64,000 nt of DNA, from positions 472,293 to 536,292 of the forward strand of contig NIVC01000121.1 in assembly GCA_002269645.1 (NCBI GenBank). Direction: 5' to 3'. The notes beneath the pieces were generated by a model. It had not been told where the DNA came from, did not search any database, and saw only the letters and a program-made list of their open reading frames with translations. The first letter of the stretch is position 1; each line of letters starts with the position of its first letter. Positions 5,771 to 53,551 of the stretch are shown piece after piece. The stretch is from Macrostomum lignano. Taxonomy: Eukaryota. The position numbers were made by a program, and so were the translations under genes.

Positions 5771-5779
5771 GGCCCTCAC

Positions 5780-12125: not shown

Positions 12126-13572
12126 ATGCCAATCTCCAAAAGAATCGGTTCTCAGCTTCTGGGCTTCATCACAGCTATCGTTTCTTCTGCTCTGGTGAGC
12201 AGCGCGGCCAGATTCGAGCTGCAGCTCGGTGCCGCAGTCAACCGAACTCTCCCAGTCGCGTTTGAAGTCGCGCACAGCTTCAACCAGCGTCACTGCTCTC
12301 AGCTGTGCTCACAAATAGCCGAGTGCTTCGGATTCTACCAGATGAAAAAAGGAAAATTGTGCGGCCTGTTTAACGCTTCTCAATTCTACCGGAAGAACTT
12401 GTGGACAAGTTCGGAGACACCGCTTGACATATTTGTGATTGACGCTTGTAAGTCCTTGTTATTCAACTCTATTGAACTTTTATAATCTTAAAAACACGCA
12501 CTTTGTCTTTAAGCGCGATTCTCCGACCGAGATTCTCCCACCGAAATTCTCCTGCCGAGATTCTCCCATCGAAATTCTCCCATCGAGATTCTCCCATCGA
12601 GATTCTCTCACAACGATTATCCCCTCGAAATTCATCCATTGAGATTCTCCCACAAAGATTATCCCATCGTGATTCTTCCACCGAGATTCTCCCATCGAGA
12701 TTCTCCCAAAAAGATTATCCCCTTGAGATTCTCCCAAAAAGATTATCCCATCGAGATTCTCCCAAAAAGACAATCCCACCGAGATTCTCCCACCGATATT
12801 CTCCCACCGAGATTCTCCCACCGAAAATCTCCCATTAAGATTCTCTCACCAAGAACAACCCTCCTGCAGGAAACCCTCCTGTGGGAAACTCTGGTTCTCC
12901 CGAATCAGTGTTTGGAGTAACATCCTTAGCTCATTAGAGTACAATCAATACTTACTTTAGCATGTGTTTGATTCAAAAGCTATTAGAATACCAGATAGGA
13001 AAGTAAACGAATATTCTCGCCGGTGAGGGGGGGTCTGTAGCTTGAGCAGCAGTGTATCTGACAAAACGCTCGTAAAAGTTTATTAGTTTTATGAAGTTTT
13101 ATAATTAAATGATTTTGCCCACTTTAAACGCAAGATGCTGCTGTATTCTACATTTGCAGACAGCAGCTCGAAGACACAGAAGCTGAGCATATCAGGCTGC
13201 TCTCAGAGTTCAGTCGGTAGCGAGGGCGTCTGCACCAGAGCCATCGACGGCAACAAGAACCCAATGTTTCACGATGGTTCATGCAGTCATACTGACACAA
13301 TCCCGAACCAGTGGTGGGAAGCCCAGCTTTTCCGACAGTCCATTGTTTCCCACGTAGTCATCTACAACAGACAGGATTGCTGCTCAGAGCGGTTGAACAA
13401 CTTTGAGCTGCTTGTGGACGGCGTTCAGTGCCGCAGCGTCAGCGTGTCGGTGCCGTTCTCTGTTGGCAACTTCACCTGCCAGATGGCCGGATCCAGGATT
13501 CGAGTCCAGAGTCGCCGTAGCAATGTTGTCACGCTGTGCGAGTTCGAGGCATACGGGATTTACTTCCCTTGA
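12126..13572 (+). CDS. Secreted PAN/apple + F-type lectin (fucolectin/FTP) protein, copy 1 (244 aa)
   Basis: Exons 12126-12447 (signal peptide; C-x3-C-x5-C-FGFY...C-x-LF PAN core; T|GTAAGT) and 13160-13572 (TTGCAG|). The join is phase 1 and in frame. Canonical motif H-x26-R-x-D-x4-R (SHT...NRQDCCSER); C-terminal TLCEFEAYG. Confidence 0.9.
12515..12870. repeat. Degenerate GAGATTCTCCC-based tandem repeat in the intron of lectin copy 1
   Basis: GAGATTCTCCC/GATTATCCC recurs with short variable spacers. Confidence 0.85.
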
Positions 13573-13749
13573 CTGGTTGAGTGATTCGGTGAGTGTGTTC
13601 AGTGGTGACGTCCTGTTTAATAGATAAAATTGAATTGTTGCATTAAAAAAGCAAAAAATTGCAAGAATTTAAAATAAAACGGATAATACATGAGTATAAT
13701 TTTAGCGATTGACTGTACGTACAGAGGCAACATTATGTACATCAGATCT

Positions 13750-15703: not shown

Positions 15704-20217
<4,514 letters not shown>

Positions 20218-21332: not shown

Positions 21333-22757
21333 GTGGTTCAATTGGTTCCATGGTTCAATTGGTCCCATGGTTCAATTGGTTCCATGGTTCAATAGGTTCC
21401 ATGGTTCAATTGGTCCCATGGTTCAATTGGTTCCATGGTTCAATAGGTTCCATGGTTCAATTGGTTCCATGGTTCAATAGGTTCCATGGTTCAATTGGTT
21501 CCATGGTTCAATTGGTTTCATGGTTCAATTGGTTCCATGGTTCAATTGGTTTCATGGTTCAATTGGTTTCATGGTTCAATTGGTTCAATTGGTTCCATGG
21601 TTCAATAGGTTCCATGGTTCAATTGGTTCTATGGTTCAATAGGTTCCATGGTTCAATAGGTTCCATGGTTCAATTGGTTTCATGGTTCAATCGGTTCCAT
21701 GGTTCAATTGGTCCCATGGTTCAATTGGTTCCATGGTTCAATTGGTTTCATGGTTCAATTGGTTTCATGGTTCAATTGGTTCAATCGGTTCCATGGTTCA
21801 ATTGGTTCCATTGGTTCAATTGGTTCCATGGTTCAATTGGTTTCATGGTTCAATTGGTTCAATTGGTTCCATGGTTCAATTGGTTTCATGGTTCAATTGG
21901 TTCCATGGTTCAATAGGTTCCATGGTTCAATTGGTTCCATGGTTCAATAGGTTCCATGGTTCAATAGGTTCCATGGTTCAATTGGTTTCATGGTTCAATT
22001 GGTTCAATTGGTTCAATTGGTTCCATGGTTCAATAGGTTCCATGGTTCAATTGGTTCCATGGTTCAATAGGTTCCATGGTTCAATAGGTTCCATGGTTCA
22101 ATTGGTTTCATGGTTCAATTGGTTCAATTGGTTCAACTGGTTCAATTGGTTCAATTGGTTCAATTGGTTCCATGGTTCAATAGGTTCCATGGTTCAATTG
22201 GTTCCATGGTTCAATAGGTTCCATGGTTCAATTGGTTCCATGGTTCAATTGGTTCAATTGGTTCAATTGGTTCAATTGGTTCCATGGTTCAATTGTTTCC
22301 ATGGTTCATTGGTTCCATGGTTCAATTGTTTCCATGGTTCAATTGGTTCCATGGTTCAATTGGTTCCATGGTTCAATTGGTTCCATGGTTCTATTGGTTC
22401 CATAGTTTTATTGGTTCCATAGTTCTATTGGTTCCATAGTTTTATTGGTTCCATGGTTCAATTGGTTCCATAGTTCTATTGGTTCCATAGTTTTATTGGT
22501 TCCATGGTTCAATTGGTTCCATAGTTCTATTGGTTCCATGGTTCAATTGGTTCTATGGTTCAATCGGTTCCATGGTTCAATTGGTTCCATGGTTCTATTG
22601 GTTCCATGGTTCTATTGTTTCCATGGTTTTATTGGTTCCATGGTTCAATCGGTTCCATGGTTCTATTGTTTCCATGGTTTTATTGGTTCCATGGTTCTAT
22701 TGGTTCCATGGTTCTATTGGTTCCATGGTTCTATTGGTTCCATGGTTCCATTAGTCC
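21333..22757. repeat. Satellite of mixed 9-bp (GGTTCAATT) and 8-bp (GGTTCCAT) monomers
   Basis: Direct reading. Monomer variants shift along the array (GGTTCTATT and GGTTTTATT appear after about 22390). Confidence 0.97.
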
Positions 22758-24720
22758 CATATAGTATTCGGAGCAAAAATTTAACTATATAAATCACAAC
22801 CATCAGTTGACCAGCAGTTGAGGCTTGCCCACTGTCGAGGCTTGATCGGCGAAACTAGAGAAATTCGCATCAGGGTGTTCATAGTCACCTGGTGCCACCT
22901 GTTGAACGTCCAGAAACTCCGCCTGGGTGAGGGCTAGTGACCAACAAGGTCAGAGCTGATGCAGACACATGTGATCGACGTGCTGATGAAATTTGGAGAC
23001 TTGGCAAGGCTGCAGTGAGGCGCAGTGCTGATTGGCGCACAGGGGTGTACTGAATACACTGGCGCTTATGGGAAAAATCCGACCTTCTGGCAGAATCGTC
23101 GAATATCTCGACGGTCCGGAGGGCTGGCGACTTGATTCTTGTTTGAGAAGGTGCACAACAAGAAGTTAGCCCGTGTTCTTGAATTTCGTGTGCCTGCGTT
23201 GCTCCGTTCCGGCGCAGCAAAAAAATTGTCAGTGGGGGGGGGGAATTTTTCCCCTCTTGGTAGTTCTACTGTCAATCTTCGCGCGACATGTTTCGCCGAA
23301 CAATCGGCATCTTCAGGCAATAATATAGATGCAGAGAGATGGAAAATTTTTAAAGTCTAGTAAGCCAAAATGATGCAAGAATGGGTAGCAGAGTTAGATG
23401 ACCCTAAATAAGAGGCAAGCGCATGGGGAGTTTAGAAATTATATTAGATGAAGAAACGACCTTCTTGATAGCTTAAAGAAGCTTGACTAAAATATACGCT
23501 CGCACGAGCGAAGTTCCCTTTTTCGCATTGGAAAGCTTTTGAAAAGTTCCCAAGAAGCTTTGCTTTTGTGAAAAAAATAGCGCTTTTTGCTATAAGCATG
23601 CAAACTTCACAGACCTTTCTCGAATTTAGACAAATCATTTCACTTCCTAAAAGCTTATATCCAATATTAATATTTATATTCACTACTCGTTAGGCGGTTG
23701 CCAATTTACTCTAATTTACTTTGTAGAACCTGATCTGGAAACTGCAGTTGACACCCACGCAGCTTTATTAAAAAATGTAGAAACTATAAAGTTTTCTGTT
23801 TGCTAGACTTATTTGTTCCGTATCTAAACTAAACCTGGATTACGCTTCATTGTTTGAACGAATTTCAGATCCGGTAGCTAGTGAAACTCAAATAAGAAAT
23901 CAACATGTAGCATATACGCTCTTACTTTACCTGTGGGAGTTTGCATCCGGCATATAGGTTTGGTACGACATGTTAACATTTATATCATTGTAACTGCAAA
24001 CTCTGATATCAAACACCAAACAAATTTTTATTATGGACCCTGCATAATGGAGAATCTATCTCATATTGAAGATAAAATTAGCCTGTAAGAGTTCGTATAG
24101 TTCCGTTTTCTGACTAAGTCGATGTTATAACATTGATTCGTTGCCTGATCGACACTGGGACCTTTTGGGATTCTGTGGCAGATGGGGAGAAATGACTGAG
24201 ATGTCAAGGCTTATTAGAGGATTGCTGAAATGCTGTGGCTCATATGAGGCCGCTGAGAATTGTGAGTTGTTGGTAGGTCAAGCATCAAAAGGGGGGTTAG
24301 GATTCAGCCATGACTTAAAGAGGGTGGGTGATGCTTTTTTGCTTGAAACATCATTTTCCCTTAAATTACTTACAACTGCGACTGTACAAGATCAAAACCT
24401 GCATGTAGTTTATTCAAGCATTCTTTTTTATTTTTTTATTTCACATTTCTTTTCGACTTGAGTTTTCAAGAAATCACAGACTATACTGAAATGTTATTAC
24501 GAGTCTTTTTACTGTAGCTACTGGTTTTGTTTCAATTGACTGAAATTCTCGGTCGATTTTCGATAGCCAAGAGCATTTTGCCTTTACTATTCTTTGCTAT
24601 TTTTTCAAGTCAATTAAATAATGTGTTAGGTACAGCAGCAAACACTGAATCCACATTAATTATCATGGGTGCGAAGCTACCTTGGTATCTTAAATATATA
24701 ATACATAAAGATTTTTGCAG

Positions 24721-25385: not shown

Positions 25386-26408
25386 TCAAGGAAGGTAATT
25401 CCCGTATGCCTCGAACTCGCACAGCGTGAGAGAGTTGCTATGACGACTCTGGACTCGAATGCTGGATCCGGCCATCTGGCAGGTGAAGTTGCCAACAAAG
25501 AACGGCACCGACACGTTGACGCTGCGGCATTGGACGCCGTCCACAAGCAGCTCAAAGTTGTTCAACCGCTCTGCACAGCAATCCTGTCTGTTGTAGATGA
25601 CTACGTGAGAAACAATGGACTGCCGCAGAAGCTGGGCCTCCCACCACTGGTTCGGGATTCTTTTAGTATGACTGCATGAACCATCGTGATACAATTGGCT
25701 CGTGTTGTTATCGATGGCTCTGGTGCAGACGCCGCCGTGATTTAGAGAACTCTGAGTGCAGTTTGTCCAGCTCAGCTTCTTTTTGTCAGCAAAAGGCAAG
25801 ACATTCAGTGTTTAGAGAGCAAGATAGCACGTGAGCCTGCAAATCTAACATGTCTTGACATGTCTGTCTAGTGAACAAGGGAGATACTTAAGCAGAAGCA
25901 CAGCTAGTACAGCAGAAAGTGTATATACACGCAATTCGTTGAGGTATTTATTTACACACTATTTATTTATTTATTTATTTATTATTTACAATTGACTAGT
26001 TGGACTTTTCGACTGTTGAGCTGTAAGTAAAGAGCACACACTAGCAATGCTTTACAAGTGAGAACAAGCTGACTTACCGAAATCAATCACAAAGATGTCA
26101 AACTGCTGCTCCGATCCGTCGGCTGTCCACGAGCTCTTCCAGTAGAAGGCGGTCGCGTTGAACAGTCCGCAGGGTCCCGCCTTGTTCTGCATCGAGTAGA
26201 ATCCGAAGCACTCGGCTATTTGTGAGCACAGCTGAGAGCAGTGACGCTGGTCGAAGCTGTGCGCGACTTCAAACGCGACTGGGTGAGTTCGGTTGACTGC
26301 GGCACCGAGCTGCAGCTCGAATCTGGCCGCGCTGCTCATCAGAGAAGAAGAAACGATAGCTGTGATGAGGCTCAGAAGCTGAGCAGCAGCTCTCAATGAA
26401 GACTGCAT
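25386..26408 (-). CDS. PAN + F-type lectin copy 2; splice acceptor mutated (TG instead of AG), possible pseudogene
   Basis: PAN exon 26408-26078 (G|GTAAGT). FTP exon 25786-25386 has an intact H-x26-RQDCCAER motif, but it is preceded by CCTTTTGCTG where paralogues have TTTTTGCAG or TTTTACAG. Confidence 0.8.
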
Positions 26409-27028: not shown

Positions 27029-27032
27029 CTCA

Positions 27033-30052: not shown

Positions 30053-30383
30053 ATGCGATTTTCAACGACAGCTTTTTCTCAGCTTCTGAGCCTCATCACA
30101 GCTATCATTTCTTCTGCTCTGGTGAGCAGCGCGGCCAGATTCGAGCTGCAGCTGGGTGCCGCAATCAACCGAACTCTCCCAGTCGCGTTTGAAGTCGCGC
30201 ACAGCTTCAACCAGCGTCACTGCTCTCAGCTGTGCTCACAAATAGCCGAGTGCTTCGGATTCTACTCGGTGCAGAACAAGGCGGGACCCTGCAGACTGTT
30301 CAACGCGACAGCCTTCTACTGGAAGAGCTCGTGGACAGTCGCCGTGTCCGAGCAGCAGTTTGAACTCTTCGTGATTGATGTCG
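30053..30383 (+). CDS. PAN exon of lectin copy 3 (orphan first exon; no dedicated FTP exon)
   Basis: ATG at 30053, signal peptide, PAN core and donor G|GTAAGT. The intron matches copy 4 up to 30565 and is then replaced by a SINE. Confidence 0.8.
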
Positions 30384-30565
30384 GTAAGTGTCGGCTTGTG
30401 CTCATTACTAGATGAAAAACTTGTAGTGGTAAGAGCATGGACCTCAGCCCCTCAGCAGCGTAAGCGTTTGTCTTCAACGGGCACAGAACTTGTTAATAAA
30501 ACCCACTTCATCCGTTGCGCTGTTTAGAAGTCCAATGCTTTGCTTGGGTCTTGGCCTTGTTTGCT

Positions 30566-34892: not shown

Positions 34893-34901
34893 CTGGTTTT
34901 T

Positions 34902-37182: not shown

Positions 37183-37282
37183 ACAAAAAGCCTTTGAGCA
37201 TACACGAAAAGGTATTAAACTACCGGTTGCAAACGACGTGCCTGCACAATTAGGAAACCATATCTCCCTCTCTGTGTAGGAA

Positions 37283-38333
37283 ATGCAGTCTTCAATGAGA
37301 GCCTCTGCTCAGCTTCTGAGCCTCATCACAGCTATCGTTTCTTCTGCTCTGGTGAGCAGCGCGGCCAGATTCGAGCTCGGTGCCGCAATCAACCGAACTC
37401 TCCCAGTCGCGTTTGAAGTCGCGCACAGCTTCAACCAGCGTCACTGCTCTCAGCTGTGCTCACAAATAGCCGAGTGCTTCGGATTCTACTCGGTGCAGAA
37501 CAAGGCGGGACCCTGCGGACTGTTCAACGCGACCGCCTTCTACTGGAAGAGCTCGTGGACATCCGCCGGATCGGAGGAGCAGTTTGACGTCTTCGTGGTT
37601 GATGTCGGTAAGTGTCGGCTCGTGCTCATCACTAGCCTACATGCAAAACAAACCTAGGTGTAGTGGTAAGAGCATAGAGCTCAGCCTCTCAGTACCATGG
37701 TAACGTAAGCGTTTTTCTTCAACTTAACGGTTATTGCGTCGCAAAAACTACTTCAGCAGTTGCGCTGTTTTGAAGTCCAACTACAAGAACAAGAAAATGG
37801 CAACGGAACAACATGTGCCAAGAAAACTCTTCCTGTTTTGCTTGGGTCTTGGCCTTGTTTGCTAGGCACGAAATATGTATGTGTCAATTGGTGCAGCGTT
37901 CCTAAATTTATATACATGCTGTCTTTTTGCAGACAAAAAGAAGCTGAGCTTGACAAGCTGTTCTCAGAGTTCCCTTGGTTACCGCGGCGTCTGCACCAGA
38001 GCCATCGATGGCAACACGAACCAAGCGTGGAGGTCTCGTTCATGCAGCCATACTAAAAGAATCCCGAACCAGTGGTGGGAGGCCCAGCTTCTGCGGCAGT
38101 CCATTGTTTCTCACGTAGTCATCTACAACAGACAGGATTGCTGTGCAGAGCGGTTGAACAACTTTGAGCTGCTTGTGGACGGCGTCCAGTGCCGCAGTGT
38201 CAGCGTGTCGGTGCCGTTCTCTGTTGGAAACTTCACCTGCCAGATGGCCGGATCCAGGATTCGAGTCCAGAGTCGTCGTAGCGATGCTCTCACGCTGTGC
38301 GAGTTCGAGGCATACGGGAATTACCTTCCTTGA
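37283..38333 (+). CDS. Secreted PAN + F-type lectin, copy 5 (241 aa)
   Basis: Exons 37283-37607 and 37933-38333; phase 1; 2-codon deletion (RFELGA vs RFELQLGA); canonical fucose motif. Confidence 0.92.
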
Positions 38334-39968: not shown

Positions 39969-41831
<1,863 letters not shown>

Positions 41832-42934
41832 CACTACCAACGCAGCCTCGCATGCAAGGTCATAGAGCAGGGCGTGTCAGATGGCTCGTTTATTTACTTC
41901 TTAGCTTTTACGGTTGCATTTATTCATTAGAATATTGAAACAAATCGTCGATATTTTCGTTATAAAGGAAAATATTAAATAAAAATTCAATTTAAACTGC
42001 CAATTGCCTGCAGCTATTGTAACATGCTCTGACGAAAAAAGAACTTCTAGTTTGTCTTTACGCGTCACAAGACAATGCTAGAACATGAAAGAAGGGCGAG
42101 TGAAAAAAGACAAATCATACATGTTGTACGCTTCAAAAAGGCTTCGGTAAATAATCCAACCTTTTCATTTTGAGATGTACTATGAGTAAAACAAACTTCG
42201 ATTAACTTGGCTATAGATTAAGTTAGATATGATTAGCTAGAGGTTCATAAGATTACATGTAAAAATAACAACATGTAATTTGTCTTTTAGTCTTTTAATT
42301 GGCCTTTAGTCTTTTAATTAAATCAGAGCGACAGTCAAGGGATCGTTGAACAAAGTCTGCAGACCAGTATAACTAACCTCCATGAAGTACATCACAATAT
42401 CATTTTTAAGTTGAAGATCGTCAAAAATTTGATCAGAACTCATGCTACAGAGATTGCCTATAATAAGTTCAAAAGAATGGAAAACTAATAGTTAACCTTT
42501 CAAAACATGACCATGCAGCGTGTGGATTTGTTTCCTTAAAAAACAATAACTTCTAAGAAACGATCCTATCCAGCTACAACATCTAGCCATCTCTATCGAG
42601 AAAAATTAACGAGATTGCGTGACTATATAGTATAGCAAAGGAACAGAAGTTTTAACTTGATTTTTTACTACAGGGGTTTCATGCAGCAGAGACTTTGTTG
42701 TACGCCCCAGAAGCCTATTCTCTGTTTGCAGTAATCCTCTACAGCAATCCTACGTCGATGACATTTATGTACTTTTAAATTACATCGACGTTCAGACGAC
42801 GTACATGTATGACTTCTTTATCCGTCGATGTAATGTTAAAAGCACATACTTTGTTTGCAATTCAGAAAACCAGAAGGTACTAAAAACTGACAACTTCCTA
42901 TCCTGCATTTCTTACATTTGTCGACTCAGAATTC

Positions 42935-44766
42935 TCAAGGAAAATAGATGCCGAACGCTTCAAACTCGCAAATGCAAAGCGCATCGTTCAGGTTATTCTC
43001 AATCCGAATTCTGCTGCCAGCGCCCAGCCAGGAGAAGTTGCCAACTGAGAATGGTGTCGATCGGCTTACCTGGGCGCATACGGCATCGTTCACCAACAAG
43101 GAGAAGTTGTTAAGCCGCTCGACACAGCAATCCTGGCGGTTGTACAGGACCACGTGCGTGACAATTGACGGTTGAAGCAATTCAGCCTCCCACCATTGAT
43201 TGGGAAATTGGTCCGTGTGCGTGCAGGATCCTGCAGAATAACTTGGATTATTGTTTCCATCAATAGCTCGACTACAAACTCCAGAGTATAGCACTGAGCT
43301 CTGACTGCAGTTGGAGATGGAGAGCTGCCGTACTGTCCAGTCTGAAATAATTGATATTCCGGGATAGTTAGAAATCTTCCTGATCTGACAATCTGCTAGC
43401 TACTACTTCCAGTAGCATAACAATCCAGAAATAAGCAAACATTTTTGGGCTATTTTCTGCTCGGACATGGCTCATCATGGTGCCATCAAGACACGCACCA
43501 GGGTCAACCTTGTCTAGAGGGTTACAAGTATATCCAGCTATGTCATTATGTGAATAGATAATCAAGAGCTACACTATTACTGTATATGCGAATACGTGCG
43601 ACTGCTTCCCATGCTTGGACATTCTGTTTCTCAAACTTAGCAGATCTTGTCTCTGTGCCATTCTTAGCAGATCTTCTCAATCTGCTCGGTTCTTGCAGGA
43701 TCTTCTAAGATGGGAGGTACATTTTTTCGTTATTCATTTGGCTAAAGTGTTCTAACTGAACTATATTTTATTTTATGACAAAATAGGACAATAAATAAAA
43801 AAATATGCGATTCGAAGCTATAAAAGGATATAAAAGCTAAGATCTTGTACGATGTAGCAAGTCGCCCAGACCTGGTAAGTTTACCTAAGTATTATTATAG
43901 CAAAGATCTTGCACGTTCTTGCAAGTACTTGCGCAGCAACCCAAGAAGATAGACAAGATCTGCTAAGAATCAACAAGTCAATGTCTTCTAGGGGATCTGT
44001 GCACATTTCTGTCTCCCATCCCCCTTGCCATTAATAATCCTTATTGCTGAAATGAGCCTGATAAAACGTCTATAAAACAAACGCTATACTGTTTCAGCAC
44101 TGGCCACCGCGAAACAAATGGAAAGAGCCCATGCAGTACTGCTTTATATATAATTAATAGAGATAGTTTTTCAGCTCCTACTGTTAGATAGGGGATACTG
44201 GACAGATAGGGGATTGAGGAAAAAGCTACAAAAACAAATTTAAAAAGCTCTTGCGTCTCTGCGGAAAAGACATGCTAGCTATGCATGCACATTGAACCTT
44301 GAGACTCTTGTGTGTCTATTTTAAATTCCTTATAAGGGCCACTCTAAGCACACTTCAGGCAACCGCAACAACCTTTTGTGATCATATAATGCGATCATCA
44401 CATGGTGTACCTCTGGCAATCATGCAGGTTTAAAGAAGCTGATTGATACTTACTGCCATCAATCACGAAGACGTCAAACTGCTGCTCCGATCCGGCGGAT
44501 GTCCACGAGCTCTTCCAGTAGAAGGCGGTCGCGTTGAACAGTCCGCAGGGTCCCGCCTTGTTCTGCACCGAGTAGAATCCGAAGCACTCGGCTATTTGAG
44601 AGCACAGCTAAGAGCAGTGACGCTGGTTGAAGCTTTGAGCGACTTCAAACGCGACTGGGAGAGTTCGCTTGACTGCGTCACCGAGCTGCAGCTCGAATCT
44701 GGCCGCGCTGCTCACCAGAGCAGAAGACATGAGCACTGCCGATAGGAAGCTGAGAATCCGGCTCAT
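42935..44766 (-). pseudogene. PAN + F-type lectin copy 6: PAN exon has a premature TAG; FTP exon is intact but the most divergent
   Basis: PAN exon 44766-44454 reads ...CACTGCTCT TAG CTGTGC (paralogues have CAG) at 44610-44608; donor A|GTAAGT. FTP exon 43341-42935 (TTTCAG|) is open with H-x26-RQDCCVER. Confidence 0.8.
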
Positions 44767-44903
44767 TGCTAGGTTACAATTAGAAGTTTGAAACGGAGCT
44801 ATTGACTTGCAGGCCACAGCGAATTATTCTATTTTTTCAGTTTATCGCATCCGTATATCAGACAACATTTATCCGTTTTGGGATGTACGCAAATCTCTTT
44901 TCG

Positions 44904-44917
44904 CTACCATGGAAACT
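44904..44917 (-). promoter_or_regulatory. RFX X-box-like motif upstream of lectin copy 6
   Basis: GTTTCCATGGTAGC on the minus strand, 1 mismatch, 138 bp before the ATG. Confidence 0.55.
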
Positions 44918-45499
44918 GAGGACCATGCAAAAAATAAAGGCTTCCTTCCCACTGCTATTTCTATTGGTTTGCGGTGACTAAATAAGTAGATATTTCTCTG
45001 ACTTGCTGAGCCCTTCTTCCCGCAAGGTACTGTACATGGGTCACGGAGTTGTATTGACATTGTACGTGTTACGACAAATTTTCTCATTAAAATTTTGTGG
45101 CTAAAAGCAATTTAATTCCGCTTGAGGCTGATCTGCGTTAAAAATTTGAGTTGGGGTTGCACTCCTCTGCCAATAATTTTTTCATTGGAGCAGTTAATAC
45201 TCCATTTTACAGAGCATTTATATACTGAATTGTAGGCTATCAGATACTTTATTCTCCCAGGATAGAGTATATGCTTGAGCAATTAAAATGCATCTGCTGT
45301 CTGTTTTTTTCTCGCTAGTATTGCATATTAGAGTCGTTAGTAATGCAGCTGTCGCATCTGTCACAACTGAAAAATGTAAAATGTATAGCTGCCAGGCTTT
45401 TGCCTCTCGCAAATAAGCATATGGTCGGAAAATCGTAATGAGTTTCTATCACCTAACTCAAGGTCAGGTGTCTTGGATTATACTTTATTGACACCCCGT

Positions 45500-46020
45500 T
45501 GGAGCTCAGCGAGTGCGGCCTTGCACCTTGTTAAGAGCTTCAATAACCCCTTTTCCAAATAAAAACGGCAGGGAAGATGGCTGGTCTCACAATGGCAAGT
45601 GTAAATCCATCAAATCAGGGGGTGAGGCCCCAGGTGGCACCGAAAGCTCTGTGGATCTGCACTAGAGTCACGAAAGCTTTGCGGGCTTAGTTTGGACATG
45701 TGGGGTCCAGCGCAACCTAATGGTCAATGGTGACGCCCAGACATCTGGTTTGTTTCTCTATGTCAACGGGTTTGCCTCAGATGGAGAGCGGTTCCATCCT
45801 CTAGTATCATTAGCTGGTGAGCATGATAGCCACGGTTTAGACTCGAGCAGGGAGCGTGAGACCGCAGCTGAGTGCCCAGCGTTCGGCAAGGTGGATGAAC
45901 CGAGGGTGATGGTCCACGTGTAGCCGATTTCCTGAACCGGATCCGGAAGCGGGCTGCTGAGCAACTCGTTCATGACCAAGTTCCAGAGAATCGGGCTGAA
46001 GGGCCAGATTTGGCTTTCCT
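45500..46020 (-). mobile_element. Degraded non-LTR reverse-transcriptase fragment
   Basis: PFSPILWNLVMNELL...IGY and LGVTID correspond to RT domains 4-7; frameshifted. Confidence 0.65.
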
Positions 46021-46639
46021 GGTTTCAAATTTTAAGTCGCGTCTTGATAAGCGGCCAGCTCAGCTAGGTCGAGAGACATTCCAAAAATTTTTTTCTCATT
46101 TCTGGACTGCATGCATGCTACTGGGAGTAGAACCTTTGCAGATTTTGAGATCAGGACGACTGCAACTATTCTGGAATATCATTGCAAGTATTTGACAATT
46201 TGCAGTCAAGCCATCGATGAAAACAAATGTTTCTATTTGTTTAAGTTTTCTAAATCGAAAGTGCACTGCTGGATAAAAAGCACAAGCGATATTAGTGATA
46301 AACAGGAATATTGGCAACATCAGCAACTCGTTTGCTAGGAGCTAAATCCTTTTTCAATTCGGATTGGAAATGTGTATTCTTCGGAAACAGAAAAGGTTTT
46401 CTGCACACAAAATGTGTCAAACATTTTTCAGAAAAAGTTCCAATTTGTCGAAATGGTGGAATTACGAAGTACTTATATCAATAATTGCCTACTCGGAATG
46501 TCAACTACTCGTAGTTCAGCTCAGCGAAAAGTTTGATTACTTAATTAAAGTTTAGCTCAAAGTCTGAATTCGTATCGTAATCGATCATTGCCTTGTCACT
46601 TACTCGCTCATTAACACACTCACTGAATCACTCAACCAG

Positions 46640-49600
46640 TCAAGGAAGGTAATTCCCGTATGCCTCGAACTCGCACAGCGTGAGAGCATCGCTACGGCGA
46701 CTCTGGACTCGAATGCTGGATCCGGCCATCTGGCAGGTGAAGTTGCCAACAGAGAATGGCACCGACACGTTGACACTGCGGCACTGGACGCCGTCCACAA
46801 GCAGCTCAAAGTTGCTCAACCGATGTGAGGCGTTCTGCCTGTTGTAGATGACTACGTGAGAAACAATGGACTGCCGCAGAAGCTGGGCCTCCCACCACTG
46901 GTTCGGGATTCCTCCTTCAGTATGGGTGCATGAGCCAGAGCTCCATGCTTGGTTGGTGTTGTTATCGATAGCTCTGGTGCAGACGCCGCCGAAAGCAACG
47001 GAACTCTGGGTGCAGCTCGTCAAGCTCAGCTTCTGCTCGTCTGTAAAAGAATGGCATCATATACATTTTAGAGCACTGCACCGATTACATATTTCATGCC
47101 TAGCCAACCCTAACGAGCCAGTTGCATCCGAAGCGCCTAGCACTGTAAGGGCGCTACGTGAGAAGCTTCAGAGCCTAGGGCTTTCAACACAAGGCAGAAA
47201 ATGTGAACTTTTAATGCGGCTGAGGGCGCACCTCGAGGGCATCGCCTCCGATCTTGAGAATGCAGACGACGAGGACGAGGAGCAAGATGAAGCTGCCACA
47301 GTGACGACGCGTGAAAGAAGAAACGGCGCTACGGCGGAGAGGCAACTGCCTTTTATCGCGAACGAGTCGGTACAACATGGTCAAGAGTCTGACGCGGCTG
47401 GCGGCCTGGACGACGAGCTGGTGGAGGCTGAGAAGCAGCTCCGACTGCTAAAGCTACGCAAGGAGGCCGCTCTGCTTCAGGCGGAAGTCAGCCAACTTCA
47501 GCGAAGGCCTGCGACGTCAAAGAATCCCGGTGAGTTGCTCATTAACCTGTGGTCCGACGATGAAGATGCTGCCCAGCAAGAGCCCAGTCGGTCTGTAGGC
47601 AAGGTGTACCGAATCCCTGAGTTTATTAACAAGCGAAAGCAGCAGGAGGCAGGAGTGACTCAGTCCATTGACAAATCAGGGAGAGTCACCTTCAGAGTGA
47701 AGGAAGCTGTTGTTGACTCGCTGACGTTTGGAGACTGGATCTCGGCGAATGCTCGAATCATGCTGAAGTTGCTGGATGATGGCAGGTTGGTGAAGAGCGG
47801 GCTGGGCGGCCAGCCTGATGTGTCAGAGTTGCGAGACTACCTGCGTTACACTGCGCGCATTGGCGAGCTGTTTGACCTCGGGTTCGACAAGGCTCGAGTC
47901 ATGAGGTTTGATGACGAGTGCAGACTGAGTGAAGATGGTGAGACGTCATGGGAGTCGCGCGGATCTGACCTTGGCCGAGTTGCCACCTATCTGATGGCCC
48001 CACAGAGTGCACCGACTGCCAGAGTTGACCGGGGGCCAAGACAAAGCCTGCAGCCACCCTGCTTTGATTTCAACAAGGAATCTGGATGCTCAAGGCGGAA
48101 CTGCCGTTTCGCTCATCGGTGCCGGCGTTGTGGACTTGGCCACTCAGCGGCGATGGCGCACAGGGATGACGGTGCTGAGGTCAGCAGGCCTCTGCATTGA
48201 CTGCGCGTTGATCCTGTTTTAACTTCCTCTGTTTTATCAACTGACCTAAAGCTGGAGGCATGGATGGAAGAGTTGGAGTCGATTGATCTGCCGCTGGACA
48301 GAAAGCAGTTTATTCTTGATGGGTGTGTCTGAGGGATTTCGGATTACGAATGTGCAGCGAGAAAACCTGAAGTCTGTCGAGGTCAGCAACTACGAGTCTG
48401 TGAATCTTTACGCTGAAGCTGTTCAAATGCAAATTCTGAGAGAAATTCGCCTTGACCGCTACCGTCGGTGCTCGGATGGGTGGCGGCCTCGGATTGTGAG
48501 TGCGCTGGGTGCCCTGCCGAAGGATGACGGTCGGGTACGCCTAATTCACGATTGCAGTCGGCCGGACAATCTGTCGGTGAACGCGCACTGGGAGAGCAAT
48601 GAAAAGTTGCGGTTTTCAAGCGCTGAAAACTTCGCAAGGAAGTTAACGAGAGGCTGCTACATTACTAAAGTTGACCTGAGTGAAGCATACCGCGCATGTG
48701 GAGTGCACCCAGGAGACTTCGTCAACACCGGCCTCAAGTTCAAATTTCCTGGCTGCGCCACTCCCACCTACATGTTTGATACGCGACTGCCGTTCGGGGC
48801 GGCAGCCTCGGTCACGTGCTTCCAACGCCTGAGCAATGCGATTCATCTGATGATGGTGCGTAGAGGCTTCATCAACACCGAGTCTTACCTGGACGACTTT
48901 GCCTACTGCGGGACGCAGGAGAACTGCCAGCGCTTCTACGTCGATCTTATTGACTTGCTGACTCGGCTGGGCTTCACCGTCAATCCGGCCAAGTGCCAGC
49001 TGCCGGCGCAGCGGATGTCATTCCTTGGAATTGAGTTCGACACTGTGGAAGGAATCAAGAAGCTGCCGGATGAGAAGGCAAGGAAGTTGATCAACCTGCT
49101 TGGTGTCGAGTCAGCCAAGGTGAGGCTTAGTCAGCGGGCCCTCCAACAGGTCATTGGCAAGTTGGGGTGGGCAGCGCAGGTCATCAGTTGCGGAAGGACC
49201 TTCTTGCGTGAGCTGATTGAGCGGTGCAACATCTTACGGCGTGGACAGCGAACGCTGGTCGACTCCGGGTTACGCAGTCAGCTGAACTGGTGGAAGGTGG
49301 CGTTGCAGGCGTGCCGATGGGTGCAGCTGTGGCCGAGCTACGATCGAGTTGTGGCGATGGAATCCGATGCGTGCGGCAGAGGTGGTGCGGCGCTGCTGCG
49401 TGACCAGGATGGTCTGGTTGACTGGTGCTACCTGGACTGGGAGAAGGATGCAGGATCTGTCTTCGCTGACCTGCCGATCAACTACAAGGAAGCGTTGGCC
49501 CCTCTGCTGGCAGTGATGAGGTGGAGGGATGTGCTCAAAGGTTGCAAGGTGAGCATCTACTGTGACAACCAGACGGCCTGTCACATCATCAACAAAGGCG

Positions 49601-52600
49601 TTTCAAAGTGTCCTGCGTTGCAGCGGCTGCTGCAGACTGTGGCTCTGATGTGTTTGCGTTTTGGAATGAGCATTCGCGCGTTTCATGTGCCTGGTGATTT
49701 TCAAATTTTTGCTGACGCTGCCTCGCGGTTGCACGAGCGAGGCCAGCTGTTAAACTTTTTACTCCGCTGTTATGGTTTTATTTGTCCTAGCATTCTACAA
49801 TCACTGCATCAGCATGCTTTTGGCTTGGCGACCGCCTCCTTTCTTCATTTTCAGGCCGCCCAGCTGCGTCAGACTCTCTTAGCAGCCGCGCTACATCGCT
49901 GCTGAGCGCTGCGTACGCACCGCGGTCGGCGCAGGCAGTCAACAGACACATCCGTGAGTGGCAGGAGTTCTGCCGCCATACCGGCTGCGATCCAGTGTCC
50001 TGCAACGTCACGAGCCTGCTGAACTATTTGGCCAGTCTGATCGGCACACGGCTACATGCCTACAGCAGCATCTCGGCAGTCTGCAGCTCTCTGTCGCTCT
50101 GGTTTCGAATAAACTCGTCGCCGGACCTGACTAAGCACGCTTCAGCGGTTCTTCTCCTACGCGGCGCTAAACGGGTCCTCGGACTGCGCGTGAACCGAAA
50201 GCGGCCTGTGTCACCTACAATGCTGACAGAGATGCGACGACTAGTTGACGAGACCGACAGGCTGCAGCTGGCCTGCTGGGCTGCGACCATCTGCTGCTGG
50301 TGGGGAATGTTGCGAAAGTCCAGCTTTCTGCCACGAACTGGCAAAGGCCCGGCCCTTTCCCGGCGCGCCGACCTGCTTCAGCATCCGAAGGGTCTGGTGT
50401 TGCGCTGCGAGTTCGGCAAGACCATCCAGTTTAAGGAGCGCAGTCACCGGGTACTGCTGCCGAGATTGGCGCGGCAGCCAGCCCTGTGCCCTGTGAGCGC
50501 AGTCGAGTGACACATCCGCGCCAACGGGTTGAAGTCAGCAGAGTCACCGCTCTGGTCCTACGCCGACAGAAGTGGCGGCTTGCGCCTGCTGACTGGGAGG
50601 CACCTGGACTGCTTCCTCCGTGACAAGTTTGCCGCAGCCGGCGTTCGACCAGGATCTTACTCCGCGCACAGTCTGCGACGAGGAGGAGCTACCTGGGCGT
50701 CTGTGCTAGGCCTCCCAGTGTCTGATATCATGCGCATTGGTGACTGGAGAAGTGAGGCTGTGCAGCGTTATCTCCCCCAGTTTCACCAGGCAGCGGAGGC
50801 TGCTGTGACTTTTGCCGGTGGTGTCTCTGCTTTGTTTTAGCTCCTCGCCTTCTGCTTTTGTTCGCTTGCTTGCTTTGGGTTTGGAGGTCGCTTTTTCGCT
50901 GTGCGCCTCCCGCGCGTTGCTCGCCTTGCTCGCCAATTGTCTCTGTGTCTCTTTGTGTCCGGGCTGGTCACTAAACGAGACCCTAGCTTATAGAGTTTTA
51001 TGGCCAAGTGTTTGAGTGAAGGACAACTTAATCACTCAGAAGACTCGCAATTAATTGTGAACAAAGTTTGAGGCTCGTTTAAAAGCATTCTTCTATGGCC
51101 AAGCCTAAGATAAGGCTAACCACGAATGTAGCATGCAACATGTACCACAGACACAAACTATCACTGACTACAAGGTAGAAACTATCCAAGTAATGTTTTT
51201 TCGAGGATTAAGTTATTAATAGCTGGCCTCTAGCGTCTGTAGTTTCCCGTCCCAAGTATAGCTTTTTGCAATTGAATTCCGCCAAACTGCAAAACCTTTC
51301 AGCCAATGGAGATTTTTCCTTCACTTCGGTGGCTTCTACCATAGACTATTTAGGACACACCGGCTAGCTTTCCCGCTCCTGTAAATGATTTCAGCCAAAC
51401 TGAAAAACCTTTCAGCCAAGACTTTCAGTCAGTGCTTTTCTCACGCAGCTAACCGGTGTGTCCTAAATAGTCTATGGTAGAAACAGCTGAAGTGAAGGCA
51501 AAATCTCCATTGGCTGAAAGGTTTTACAATTTGGCTGAATTCAATCGCAAAAAGCTATATTGAATACTCCATGGTTTGAGTTGACTATGGAAGGTAAGTC
51601 ATTAGACAACTTAATTTATCATGCTGTTATGGAACCACGGGCCAGTAGACAAGGTACGACTTGAGCTTGTATTTACAGAAAGAGCTTTCATTTACATAAA
51701 AACAGGGCATTAATGAATTATATTTTTAAGTCAAATTGAAAGCATCAAAATTTACAAAATTTCAACACTTTACGATAACTGATGTCGCTGCAAACACAAT
51801 CCAAACAATCGGTTGGAGCGCATCTCCAGCCAGCGCAATTGTTAGCAGTGATTGCCCTGCCAACAGGTTCGGTGACGCCTCTCTCTCGAATAACATGAAT
51901 CTCAACTGCTCAAGTGTCACTCCTTTTACTGAAACTTGCTCATCCTCAGCCAATTCGCTTCTGTCCCGATAGTACTCTTGGAGTTACAGTGAAAATTAGG
52001 CCCATTCATAAAAATTACCCAGTTTCCGTTAGTGGCCAGTTGATGGCAGCGATCTGCTGGGTGATCTAAAAATGCCTAAAACCTGTTCTGCGTTTTGCCA
52101 CCTCTCTGGATGGCAGAATGCACCAACCCAAATTCCGACGAACTTGCCATGCAAACCGTAACGAAAGGACCCTCTGGGTTGTCACTGTGCGCTTTAATGA
52201 AGAGAAAAAAGAGAAGAGATGCCGAACTTTTCTGGAGAGAAGCAATGGTCAGAGCGTTTGACAATTGCCGTTTCTTAGTTGGCGAAATATACTTTGTGTA
52301 CCTCAAGACTACTCGGTCTTTAATGACCATCAATACATTGGATGTCGCCGATCGCATTACCTCGGTTCAATAGATTCATGACAACAGTGTTAACACAGAC
52401 GCAATGATTTGTGTACTTGCGTGATGGATTCACCCTCCTAGAAATCCGAGCCATCATGCCATGCCGTTCAGGTGATATTACCTAGAACTTGCGTTGTACT
52501 TTACCACTGCTCCAAAGAGAATTTTGCTTCACGAGACGAGACAACAAGCTTAAATAATGGCGCACCGCAGCTAAAGGCATACAATCTTAATCTGCTTTCC

Positions 52601-53551
52601 GGTGCATAGGTTGTTACCGTTGGTTTACTTCTCTTTACCTGACATGACCAAGTGGACGCAGTCCGTTCCAACCTTCTCGGAAAAGACAATAGCGTCCTTC
52701 ATCATCTGGTGGAGCCACTCACGCCCTCTAAATCCAGAATGCGTACATAACGTGCAGAAAACTTCGTCGTGTAGTTTCACAGGCGTAGTTCAATCATAAT
52801 ACGCTCCGAGCTTCATAGCAACCTCTTCAGTGATTGCCTGAAAAAGCCGCTCAGCTTACCAATGCATCTGTTTCGTTTCACAGACGCGATAAGAGCAGCT
52901 TTATAGGTTTTTTCAAACTTCTGAAATACGACATTGACAATCACTTCCTAATTCCTCACTTCTTTGAAGTGACGGTGTAGACTGGTAAGAAAGCCGTCTG
53001 CTCTAGGCAAGGATGCAAACCACATGCGCATATACTCTATAAGTTACCTGTGCGGCATGCTGTCAATACAATCAGGAAGATTCTCCGAGCGTAAAAATGT
53101 CATCTGTGGGCAATTCTCATAGATCCTTGGCGTTTACTACCCGGGCACTCAAGTACTGTGCCCGTTGAAGACAATTGCATACGCTACTGAGGGGCTGAGA
53201 TCCATTTAGGTCAGTGATGAGCACGAGCCGACACTTACCGACATCAACCAGGAAGACGTCAAACTGCTCGTCCGATCCGGCGGCTTTCCACGAGCTCTTC
53301 CAGTAGAAGGCGGTCGCGTTAAACAGTCCGCAGGGTCCCGCCTTGTTCTGCACCGAGTAGAATCCGAAGCACTCGGCTATTTGTGAGCACAGCTGAGAGC
53401 AGTGACGCTGGTTGAAGCTGTGCGCGACTTCAAACGCGACTGGGAGAGTTCGGTTGACTGCGGCACCGAGCTGCAGCTCGAATCTGGCCGCGCTGCTCAC
53501 CAGAGCAGAAGACATGAGCACTGCCGATAGGAAGCTGAGAATCCGACTCAT
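46640..53551 (-). CDS. Secreted PAN + F-type lectin, copy 7 (237 aa), with a 6.2-kb intron and an altered sugar-binding motif
   Basis: Exons 53551-53239 (G|GTAAGT) and 47040-46640 (TTTTACAG|); phase 1; in frame. Both intron ends (47041-47105 and 53150-53238) are homologous to the short introns of copies 4 and 5. The motif reads H-x27-RQNASHR. Confidence 0.85.
47106..48200 (+). CDS. Gag-like ORF1 of the YR retrotransposon (SAP domain + Cys/His finger), 5' end truncated or non-ATG
   Basis: TVRALREKLQSLGLSTQGRKCELLMRL fits the SAP pattern; C-terminal CCCH/CCHC-like finger. Confidence 0.75.
   Translation, partial: NPNEPVASEAPSTVRALREKLQSLGLSTQGRKCELLMRLRAHLEGIASDLENADDEDEEQDEAATVTTRERRNGATAERQLPFIANESVQHGQESDAAGGLDDELVEAEKQLRLLKLRKEAALLQAEVSQLQRRPATSKNPGELLINLWSDDEDAAQQEPSRSVGKVYRIPEFINKRKQQEAGVTQSIDKSGRVTFRVKEAVVDSLTFGDWISANARIMLKLLDDGRLVKSGLGGQPDVSELRDYLRYTARIGELFDLGFDKARVMRFDDECRLSEDGETSWESRGSDLGRVATYLMAPQSAPTARVDRGPRQSLQPPCFDFNKESGCSRRNCRFAHRCRRCGLGHSAAMAHRDDGAEVSRPLH
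48201..49905 (+). CDS. Reverse transcriptase-RNase H ORF of the YR retrotransposon (one +1 frameshift near 48321)
   Basis: The N-terminal STDLKLEAWMEEL...FILDG is in the gag frame; VSEGFRI onward is in the +1 frame. Catalytic motifs are intact. Confidence 0.88.
49863..50840 (+). CDS. Tyrosine recombinase ORF (overlaps the RT ORF end; one in-frame TGA at 50508)
   Basis: AAYAPRS...WQEFC...LLNYLA N-terminal part; catalytic R, K, HxxR, W and Y all present; the two supplied ORFs are in the same frame, 18 nt apart. Confidence 0.88.
51257..51559. mobile_element. MITE of about 300 bp with ~110-bp TIRs, flanked by TA
   Basis: TA|TAGCTTTTTGCAATTGAATTC...CCATAGACTATTTAGGACACACCGG is mirrored by CCGGTGTGTCCTAAATAGTCTATGG...GAATTCAATCGCAAAAAGCTA|TA. 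Confidence 0.85.

Follow-up and report, generated by a model that had tools for sequence, protein, structure and literature searches.

The flatworm Macrostomum lignano likely possesses a lineage-specific multigene cluster of secreted lectins of ~240 amino acids, in which an N-terminal PAN module precedes an F-type lectin domain (FTLD) and whose members are putative fucose binders with loop diversity. F-type lectins, proteins of innate immunity and gamete recognition, are a classic example of diversification within species, and to our knowledge their study has been almost confined to fish, amphibians, molluscs, arthropods, and bacteria. What is new here is the combination of domains; the lectin type itself is well known, and the cluster is not a new kind of system. 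From its sequence we infer that the array may be termed a 'glycan-recognition system'. As transgenesis and RNAi are feasible in M. lignano, the family is an accessible entry point to glycan recognition in flatworms, in which three members are canonical, one is a natural variant of the binding site, and others are dated pseudogenes, and the cluster is suited to the study of the part that exon-level recombination and gene conversion play in shaping lectin repertoires.

Gene structure and state of the copies

The window, which denotes the whole 64,000-nucleotide stretch of M. lignano DNA analysed here, was searched by tblastn with the two exons of the first copy (c1) and by nhmmer with exon DNA profiles. 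Both searches recovered the set of exons that the initial annotation had listed, namely seven exons encoding a signal peptide and N-terminal module (N exons; nhmmer E-values of 1e-111 to 1e-133), six exons encoding the FTLD (FTP exons; 1e-119 to 1e-156), and one FTP remnant. These elements occupy both strands from 12.1 to 53.6 kb, and the listed coordinates proved correct throughout (Table 1); neither search found a further N or FTP exon in the window. The genes have two exons separated by a phase-1 intron. As every N exon is followed, after one extra base, by a GTAAGT donor and five of the six FTP exons are preceded by a YCAG acceptor, the products are in-frame proteins of 238-244 aa. A CAP-domain gene and remains of retroelements interrupt the array, and the region is rich in satellites and retroelement fragments. 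No Rfam family was found anywhere in the window. An AATAAA hexamer lies ~100 nt past the stop codon in c1 and c5 only, and the scan for poly(A) signals and TATA boxes was otherwise uninformative.

Table 1. Exons of the seven copies and associated features (positions within the window; minus-strand exons are given in reading direction)
Feature	Span	Strand	N exon	FTP exon	Near-invariant 156-nt tract	Remarks
c1	12126-13572	+	12126-12447	13160-13572	12183-12338	Intact, 244 aa; intron 12448-13159; FTP exon includes TGA stop
14-mer tandem array	12517-12854					Within c1 intron
c2	25386-26408	-	26408-26078	25786-25386	26196-26351	ORFs intact
c3	30053-30383	+	30053-30383		30110-30265	N exon alone; ORF intact, GTAAGT donor
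c4	32619-33599	+	32619-32949	33199-33599	32676-32831	Intact, 243 aa
FTP 3'-end remnant	34840-34898	+				59 nt; nhmmer E 5e-10, tblastn E 0.003; profile positions 349-407 of about 448
c5	37283-38333	+	37283-37607	37933-38333	37340-37489	Intact, 241 aa
c6	42935-44766	-	44766-44454	43341-42935	44572-44727	Pseudogene and chimera
c7	46640-53551	-	53551-53239	47040-46640	53357-53512	6.2-kb intron
Retroelement ORFs	46866-49905	+				On opposite strand in c7 intron; SAP-domain ORF 46866-48200, RVT_1 and RT_RNaseH ORF 48283-49905

The copies differ in their state of preservation. In c1, a GTAAGT donor and a TTGCAG acceptor join the exons, and the FTP exon carries the motif H-x26-RQDCCSER. The acceptor of the FTP exon of c2 has changed from CAG to CTG (TTGCTG/AC), and inspection of its surroundings revealed no in-frame substitute AG; because the acceptor AG is lost, c2 is probably a splice-dead pseudogene. 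Copy c3 lacks an FTP exon. Its N exon and 5' intron sequence (30053-30565) are 97.7% identical over 513 nt to those of c4 (32619-33131) and its upstream motifs are also present at c2 and c5; it may be an orphaned piece, or it may supply the FTP exon at 33199 (FTP4) with an alternative first exon, in which case it would not be a dead copy. The N exon of c6 is interrupted by an in-frame TAG at 44610-44608, and its FTP exon, which is strongly divergent from the others in the window (56-63% amino acid identity), has lost a structural Cys through a Cys to Trp change at the equivalent of Cys124 of AAA. The ORF and splice sites of c7 are kept, but RQDCCAER has become RQN-ASHR, by which the Asp and the vicinal Cys pair are gone and the spacing is cut to x3, and AIDGN has become AIDNN. 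A search for an LTR pair flanking the reverse-transcriptase ORF of the c7 intron found none.

Judged by these sequence features, the cluster comprises canonical units c1, c3/c4, and c5, a copy with an altered binding site, c7, and the pseudogenes c2 and c6. The initial annotation had divided the copies into intact (c1, c4, c5, and c7) and damaged (c2, c3, and c6); its lesions in the latter group are right and c1, c4, and c5 are indeed canonical, but c7 is intact only formally, as part of its fucose motif is lost. The mixture of intact and damaged copies is consistent with the birth-and-death pattern it had suggested and, with three or four of the seven copies defective, decay of the cluster is possible.

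M. lignano is described, in the accessible part of the source, as a hidden polyploid that is hard to assemble (PMC10468722), which together with the near identity of c3 and c4 would allow the copies to be seen as one or two genes duplicated by the assembly or present as separate haplotypes. We consider this extremely improbable, as the copies lie on a single contig in both orientations, their exons are only 60-94% identical at the nucleotide level, their introns (249 nt to 6.2 kb in length) and flanks are mostly unalignable, and the lesions are private to each copy. Orientation, divergence, and private lesions led us to reject this reading for all copies except possibly c3 and c4, the one pair that could be an artefact, in agreement with the earlier view that such duplication was unlikely.

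Domains of the encoded proteins

The identification of the FTP exon by its H-x26-R-x-D-x4-R motif in the initial annotation is supported by three comparisons. In the profile check of the spliced proteins that it had proposed, the Pfam families F5_F8_type_C_2 (PF22633; 47-49 bits, cut-off 27.8) and F5_F8_type_C (PF00754; 32-38 bits, cut-off 28.2) scored above cut-off over the FTP part. Sequence searches of the PDB matched 3cqo (MsaFBP32; E 1e-31), 2j1r (1e-13), and 1k12 (4e-12), and the alignment places the equivalents of H52/R79/R86, C82-C83, and C50 within the FTP exon. Of the PDB matches returned by Foldseek, the best 11 are all F-type lectins (E ~2e-7, TM to target 0.6-0.72, with a moderate model pLDDT of 64-83 in this domain). 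The fucose motif is defined as HX(26)RXDX(4)R/K, with AAA His52, Arg79, and Arg86 as its key residues (PMC5297725), and occurs with exact spacing in five of the six FTP exons (c1, c2, c4, c5, and c6), c7 being the one without it. The calcium motif, defined as h2DGx (PMC5712786), reads AIDGN in c1, c4, c5, and c6 and AIDNN in c2 and c7. Equivalents of all structural Cys residues are present in c1, c2, c4, and c5, while c6 lacks that of C124 and c7 the CC pair. By these comparisons, the C-terminal exon encodes a bona fide F-type lectin domain.

The N exon begins with a signal-peptide-like segment, a hydrophobic core with a mean KD value of 2.35-2.5 over ten residues followed by SSA-A, and no C-terminal hydrophobic tail was found in the spliced products; this agrees with a secreted protein, as had been proposed, that has no C-terminal anchor. 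The module that follows has a Cys core of C-x3-C-x5-C-x12-C, read straight from the sequence, and HC-SQL-C-SQIAE-C-FGFY...GP-C-GLF is invariant across all copies and paralogues. Pfam returned no PAN match at E<=1 for the whole proteins of the window, and the best match for their N-modules alone, PAN_2 at 14.5 bits, lies below the cut-off of 21.1. The N-modules of two paralogues, P0011 and P0013, exceed the PAN_1 cut-off of 21.4 with 22.3 and 23.3 bits, and a window N-module matches that of P0011 with an E-value of 9e-8. Alignment of the N-module to PAN_1 repeats by hhalign gave a probability of 96.5% (E 7e-10), and an N-module profile run against 1.84e9 proteins returned PAN_1 and PAN_2 proteins together with M. 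lignano paralogues. In the PDB this profile matched only three entries, all of them PAN/apple micronemal proteins, with weak E-values of 0.23-8.4. In the PAN fold a central helix packs onto a beta-sheet; AlphaFold2 models of the N-module are unreliable, with a pLDDT of 51 for the module alone (5-sequence alignment) and 23-42 within full-length c4 (8 sequences). Apple domains, as in factor XI and prekallikrein, have six Cys; the N-module has four and lacks the third apple disulfide, that between the first and last Cys. With only four Cys it does not qualify as a strict apple domain, and its sequence suggests a divergent, minimal four-Cys PAN-like module. Of the PAN/apple assignment made earlier, the PAN-like part thus stands, on the indirect evidence of the paralogues that pass PAN_1, the hhalign probability, and the PDB profile matches, while the apple subtype does not.

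Variation among the copies and proposed role

Variation between the FTLDs is concentrated in three loops, CDR1, CDR2, and the loop that follows the His. Variable amino acid positions make up 15 of 23 positions in these loops versus 26 of 111 elsewhere (Fisher P = 2.6e-4, for five sequences and with loop limits set after viewing the alignment), and pN/pS is 1.33 in the loops (bootstrap 0.75-3.0, a range that includes 1; five sequences) versus 0.34 in the scaffold. CDR1 lies between the two members of an extra, family-specific Cys pair, and the variation in CDR2 falls at positions equivalent to Phe45/Tyr46. With a scaffold ratio that drops to ~0.08 in sliding core windows at a pS of 0.1-0.2, the substitution pattern indicates that the scaffold is under purifying selection, and thus that constraint acted on the protein after duplication. 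This bears on the reading in which the region is a silent, decaying graveyard where every copy is effectively a pseudogene. Damage affects two to four of the seven copies, satellites and retroelement fragments abound, and the intact copies are absent from public protein sets, all of which would fit; we nevertheless hold it to be very improbable, as c1, c4, and c5 keep their ORFs, canonical splice sites, structural Cys, and motif, upstream motifs are still common to c1, c2, c3, and c5, and the scaffold bears the mark of constraint after duplication.

The N and FTP exons have discordant histories among the copies. Within the N exon, a near-invariant tract of 156 nt encodes the stretch from the end of the signal peptide to ...ECFGFY; conservation along the genes is highest in the first half of the N-module, and even in the pseudogene c6 the tract still matches at 94-96%. 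RNA structure as the cause of this invariance was considered and rejected (z-score of -0.76, no Rfam family). The cluster would have evolved through duplication, both tandem and inverted, recombination at exon level or gene conversion, the insertion of retroelements, and the loss of copies to pseudogenisation. A bolder proposal, which we regard as doubtful, is a flatworm-specific system with a constant handle and a variable head, in which the tract is kept by gene conversion or nucleotide constraint, FTLD exons are shuffled by recombination in the intron, and the CDR loops diversify. If true, this would amount to combinatorial secreted receptors for fucosylated glycans, serving immunity or mate/gamete recognition.

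We propose that, after cleavage of the signal peptide, the FTLD would bind terminal alpha-L-fucose through a His/Arg/Arg triad, predicted to consist of FTP-exon residues H40, R67, and R74 (H52, R79, and R86 in AAA), in a pocket that the vicinal disulfide would support together with a structural Ca2+ site (AIDGN). The paralogues differ chiefly in CDR1, CDR2, and the loop right after the His. As these same loops set the specificity for subterminal sugars in eel lectins, the copies probably form, by analogy, a small set of lectins with finely differing specificities. Oligomerisation is the probable task of the PAN module, or else a second contact with protein or glycan. A different division of labour, in which the PAN module is the main binder and the FTLD scaffold has a role other than fucose binding, such as a structural or adhesive one in mucus or extracellular matrix or the binding of another ligand, seems quite improbable to us. 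PAN/apple domains can be lectins, and the sole PDB matches of the N-module profile, SML-2, EtMIC5, and TgMIC4, have lectin function; no other part of the genes is as conserved as the first half of the N-module, and c7 and c2 depart from the calcium motif and c7 from the fucose motif. Set against this are the full HX26RXDX4R motif in five of the six FTP exons, the vicinal Cys pair, the structural Cys, and the purifying selection on the scaffold, a pattern of conservation that is what a working fucose pocket predicts.

For such fucose-binding proteins, our leading guess is the recognition of microbial fucosylated glycans in mucus or at epithelia, and our second guess is gamete or seminal-fluid recognition. 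The latter would make them sperm, egg, or seminal-fluid lectins under sexual selection, an unlikely alternative to the microbial role. The gamete-recognition FTLDs of oysters diversify at pocket sites, recombine in an intron, and include isoforms without the triad (PMC5712786), to which the loop-focused variation, mosaic exons, and partial loss of the triad region in c7 can be likened, and the accessible parts of two studies report fast evolution of reproduction-related genes in Macrostomum (PMC7336406, PMC8662610). Against a reproductive role, no lectin, fucolectin, or PF00754 term occurs in the available part of the supplementary files of the M. lignano seminal-fluid screen, positional RNA-seq, and three-species RNA-seq papers, weak negatives, given incomplete files whose annotation vocabulary is not established.

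Relatives and comparison with known systems

In protein databases, the PAN-FTLD architecture occurs in M. lignano only, where it is represented by 15 sequences in seven clusters at 90% identity. The sole public model at the locus, UniProt A0A1I8J772, is chimeric, combining FTP7 with the pseudogene c6, and is the only representative of the locus in a database of 5.8 billion proteins, from which the intact copies are absent; the public annotation thus merges two broken copies and leaves the intact genes unannotated. Our searches of the accessible literature found nothing on Macrostomum together with F-type lectin, fucolectin, discoidin, or PAN, nor did they yield an account of PAN–FTLD proteins or of clustered FTLD genes in a flatworm. 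The terms fucolectin, PF00754, IPR006585, discoidin, and fucose do not occur in the available part of the supplementary files of M. lignano transcriptome papers, and these searches turned up neither transcripts nor proteins of any copy. The initial annotation knew of no described cluster of this kind in flatworms, and the accessible literature yielded none, but paralogues are already in UniProt under the automatic names 'FTP domain-containing' and 'Apple domain-containing', so the proteins of the family are only undescribed, not unseen.

On the side of the N-module, the apicomplexan micronemal proteins SML-2 (2YIL), EtMIC5 (1HKY), and TgMIC4 (4A5V) resemble the flatworm proteins through the C-x3-C...C-x-L core that underlies the profile matches (at weak E-values of 0.23-8.4), but they are arrays of apple domains without an FTLD. 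Nematode secreted proteins that join a C-type lectin to a PAN/CW module (PMC5297725) are likewise invertebrate lectin–PAN fusions, although their lectin has a C-type fold, not an F-type one, and evidence for homology is limited to the PAN module. The single-FTLD fish fucolectins Anguilla anguilla agglutinin (1K12) and Morone saxatilis FBP32 (3CQO) share with the flatworm proteins a secreted FTLD with the same His/Arg/Arg spacing, equivalents of vicinal Cys82-Cys83, of Cys50-Cys146, and of Cys108-Cys124, and the h2DGx motif. The flatworm proteins have, in addition, an N-terminal PAN module with an exon to itself and two further Cys that enclose CDR1, and their FTLDs are only ~30-38% identical to those of fish, with sugar binding predicted from sequence. 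In the Japanese eel, seven eFL isoforms, 68-78% identical, vary mostly in CDR1 and CDR2 (PMC5712786), and thus constitute a multigene repertoire with loop-centred variation as in the flatworm copies. The FTLDs of the sperm bindin of Crassostrea gigas combine diversification of pocket sites, recombination that reshuffles gene parts, and triad-less isoforms (PMC5712786), which parallels the loop variation, exon mosaicism, and altered c7 site of the flatworm cluster. Oyster bindin, however, consists of tandem FTLD repeats in few genes that are varied by recombination in an intra-domain intron and by alternative splicing, whereas the flatworm has separate, clustered two-exon genes, each with a PAN module.

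Exon complement and state of the copies

Using the two exons of c1, one of the seven gene copies (c1-c7), as protein queries, we recovered seven N exons (encoding signal peptide and N-module), six C-terminal FTP exons (encoding the F-type lectin domain, FTLD) and one short C-terminal fragment from the window by tblastn. An nhmmer search of the window with DNA profiles of both exon types identified the fragment as a 59-nt FTP remnant (E = 5e-10) and revealed no further match. Exon match E-values between 1e-38 and 1e-156 exclude chance as their source, and as both methods returned the same seven N and six FTP exons, the coordinates and counts in the initial annotation are correct. N exons run from an ATG to one extra base before a GTAAGT donor, indicating a phase-1 intron, while FTP exons have a YCAG acceptor, an 'AC' start and a conserved TGA end. 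As the N-termini comprise a basic n-region, a hydrophobic core with a Kyte-Doolittle mean of 2.35-2.5 over 10 residues and a small-residue VSSA-A site, and inspection of the products revealed no C-terminal hydrophobic segment, we predict soluble, secreted proteins.

Complete ORFs, canonical splice sites, the full cysteine set and both motifs are found in c1, c4 and c5. The ORFs of c2 are whole, its acceptor reads CTG and, by inspection, the close downstream AGs are out of frame. c3 comprises an N exon and 5' intron with 97.7% identity to c4 across 513 nt, and the mature N-modules of the two have the same amino-acid sequence. c6 contains a TAG (44610-44608) and has lost its Cys124 equivalent. 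In c7 the ORF is retained with RQDCCAER changed to RQN-ASHR, making it at best a binding-site variant; the earlier division into intact (1, 4, 5, 7) and damaged (2, 3, 6) copies thus stands for copies 1-6, and c7 is not plainly intact. The c2 FTP exon carries AIDNN where AIDGN is expected, as does that of c7, and the two also have SVNVS, GSSIR and GNYLP in common, which suggests shared ancestry or conversion between them.

Upstream of the ATG, AAACTRCCGGWTGCAA is present in c2, c3 and c5 only (three matches versus 0.16 expected), while TGCTATGGTA precedes c1, c2, c3 and c5, the c3 copy being near-exact with one mismatch and c4 having only a degenerate version; both are candidate promoter elements. 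Because c3 retains its donor, AAACTRCCGGWTGCAA and a near-exact TGCTATGGTA, it could serve the FTP exon at 33199 as an alternative first exon.

The array is interrupted by another gene and by retroelement remains, and large satellite arrays are spread across the window. A CAP/CRISP exon between c1 and c2 represents another secreted-protein gene within the lectin cluster. No LTR pair was found around the retroelement ORFs of the c7 intron, and the Ig-domain ORF belongs to a neighbouring gene.

Coordinates of gene copies and other features in the window
Feature	Position	Strand	Details
c1	N exon 12126; FTP exon near 13162; 156-nt tract 12183-12338	+	In-frame spliced protein 244 aa; intron 712 nt
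c2	N exon 26408; FTP exon near 25790 (25386-25786); 156-nt tract 26196-26351	-	Spliced protein 243 aa, if splicing occurs; intron 291 nt
c3	N exon 30053; 156-nt tract 30110-30265	+	
c4	N exon 32619; FTP exon near 33195; 156-nt tract 32676-32831	+	In-frame spliced protein 243 aa; intron 249 nt
c5	N exon 37283; FTP exon near 37929; 156-nt tract 37340-37489	+	In-frame spliced protein 241 aa; intron 325 nt
c6	N exon 44766; FTP exon near 43345; 156-nt tract 44572-44727	-	Protein 239 aa, interrupted; intron 1112 nt
c7	N exon 53551; FTP exon near 47050 (46640-47040); 156-nt tract 53357-53512	-	Spliced protein 237 aa; intron 6198 nt
FTP remnant	34840-34898 (tblastn near 34848)	+	
AAACTRCCGGWTGCAA	26464-26479 (c2, -); 30008-30023 (c3, +); 37217-37232 (c5, +)		30-70 nt before ATG
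TGCTATGGTA	12016 (c1); 26524 (c2); 29968 (c3); 37171 (c5)		~85-125 nt before ATG
CAP/CRISP-domain exon	19327-19659	-	Cysteine-rich secretory, venom-allergen-like; Pfam E 2e-12
RNase H fragments	40543-41242	+	Between c5 and c6
Retroelement ORFs	46866-49905	+	SAP domain, RVT_1+RT_RNaseH; in c7 intron, opposite strand
Ig-domain ORF	7786-8367	-	I-set/Ig_3; outside cluster; preceded by signal-peptide-like segment
Tandem array	1-1096		31-mer
Tandem array	2577-3486		24-mer
Tandem array	4492-5771		(ACAG)n
Tandem array	12517-12854		14-mer (c1 intron)
Tandem array	17913-19028		(TCTA)n, 99% purity
Tandem array	21334-22760		17-mer
Tandem array	41455-41837		(ACT)n
Tandem array	62091-62835		28/34-mers
A0A1I8J772 parts	FTP7 exon 47038-46670; spurious exon 45994-45824; c6 N exon; FTP6 exon	-	Stop skipped in c6 N exon

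Identity of the two modules

The C-terminal domain scores over the curated Pfam cut-offs for both F5_F8_type_C_2 and F5_F8_type_C. Its best solved-structure match is the striped-bass F-lectin FBP32 (3cqo, E = 1e-31), with further matches to Streptococcus pneumoniae fucose-binding modules, the Anguilla anguilla agglutinin (AAA; 1k12, E = 4e-12) and lectinolysin, and an AlphaFold model of moderate confidence over this domain (pLDDT 64-83) returned F-type lectin domains as all of its top 11 Foldseek matches. Exon residues H40, R67 and R74 align with AAA His52, Arg79 and Arg86, the CC pair with the vicinal Cys82-Cys83, and C38 and the '...LC-E...' cysteine with Cys50 and Cys146; AIDGN corresponds to the h2DGx Ca2+ motif, and the spacing of the published F-type lectin motif H-x26-R-x-D-x4-R (PMC5297725) is exact. 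Taken together, F-type lectin membership is well supported for c1, c2, c4, c5 and c6, which are putative sugar binders, in agreement with the initial annotation of these exons.

An extra cysteine pair, C-x10-C ('SCTQSSLGFGGVC'; for example 33223-33258 on the plus strand in c4), flanks the CDR1-equivalent loop in every FTP copy in the window and in P0009 and P0011, two M. lignano paralogues. This pair is family-specific and lies outside the canonical AAA disulfide set, and the loop may be a disulfide-stapled variable loop.

The N-modules in the window fall below all Pfam PAN thresholds (best PAN_2, 14.5 bits, E = 0.039), and AlphaFold gave no fold for them. An invariant HC-x3-C-x5-C-FGFY-x8-C-x-LF pattern matches the four-Cys PAN core. 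When the five intact window modules were combined into a profile and searched exhaustively against 1.84 billion representatives, only six proteins matched. Two are M. lignano paralogues that share the architecture, one has four PAN_1 repeats (Pfam 1e-35), one is small and scores over the PAN_2 cut-off, and the other two are clearly spurious. Alignment of the family N-module profile with those PAN repeats by hhalign gave 96.5% probability (E = 7e-10) across the Cys core, and the only three PDB profile matches were PAN/apple micronemal proteins. Furthermore, the N-modules of P0011 and the paralogue P0013 clear the PAN_1 gathering score and share homology with the window module (E = 9e-8); under UniProt automatic rules one paralogue is called 'Apple domain-containing' and another 'CW domain-containing'. 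From these sequence comparisons we conclude that the N-module is a divergent minimal PAN domain, which retains the PAN part of the earlier PAN/apple assignment and removes the six-Cys apple domain.

Loop variation and mosaic histories

Across the FTLDs of c1, c2, c4, c5 and c7, the scaffold is under purifying selection (sliding-window pN/pS near 0.08, pS 0.1-0.2), and most amino-acid changes fall in three segments corresponding to AAA CDR1 (apex Glu26/His27), CDR2 (Phe45/Tyr46) and the residues immediately after His52. With loop limits set after viewing the alignment, 15/23 loop positions vary versus 26/111 elsewhere (Fisher P = 2.6e-4), and pN/pS is 1.33 (bootstrap 0.75-3.0) in the loops versus 0.34 (0.21-0.52) in the scaffold for these post hoc limits. 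This contrast indicates loops that are released from constraint or diversifying, with the loop ratio not significantly above 1.

Judged by their identities, the exons have discordant histories. The c6 N exon is 87-90% identical to the c2-c7 N exons and 73% to that of c1, while its FTP exon is 56-63% identical to the others, with saturated dS. c6 (42935-45038, minus strand) is a chimera with three sources. It is c7-like in its upstream region and at its 5' end (38/39 nt at the latter) and c5-like in the 3' half of its N exon (114/117 nt), and its FTP exon descends from a much older lineage; the C-terminal ALCICEFEAFG of this exon resembles P0009.

A 156-nt N-exon tract is 94-100% identical across all pairs of the six two-exon copies (156/156 between c1 and c7), and the same tract is visible in c3 in the codon alignment. 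In the corresponding comparisons the N-exon remainder is 62-67% (3' part) and 39-50% (5' part) identical. Over 30 codons of the tract there are zero synonymous differences. Gene conversion is the simplest explanation and a likely one; nucleotide-level constraint keeping the tract identical is a possible alternative, and for the tract we detected no signal of RNA structure (z -0.76) and no Rfam match.

Database family and comparison with known lectins

The best database match, UniProt A0A1I8J772 from M. lignano ('FTP domain-containing protein', 368 aa), maps by tblastn to the minus strand of the window (42938-47038) at 96-99% identity, which identifies the window as M. lignano DNA. This sole public model from the locus is a mis-joined chimera of two defective copies, the FTP exon of c7 and c6, and none of the intact copies (c1, c4, c5) turned up in the protein databases searched. 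A full-length family profile revealed six further M. lignano clusters of PAN+FTLD architecture, 33-46% identical to c4, giving seven clusters at 90% identity (15 sequences) with the chimeric model; all non-Macrostomum matches were FTLD-only, mostly fish fucolectins. Our literature search found no paper on proteins with the PAN–FTLD architecture, nor on F-type lectins from Macrostomum.

How products with the gene structure, domain identity, motif conservation, lesions, loop-focused variation and mosaicism observed here would work may be drawn from the F-type lectin literature: the proteins would be secreted and bind fucose, stabilised by Ca2+, through the triad, with CDR1 and CDR2 setting fine specificity and the PAN module either oligomerising the protein or making a second contact with ligand. 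On all sequence criteria examined, the genes belong to the F-type lectin family, a known kind; what is new is that PAN and FTLD are combined, that this architecture has expanded in a flatworm, and that a constant tract and variable exons form a mosaic. In their way of working the genes may be likened to the family of eel fucolectin isoforms; their recombinational diversification recalls oyster bindin.
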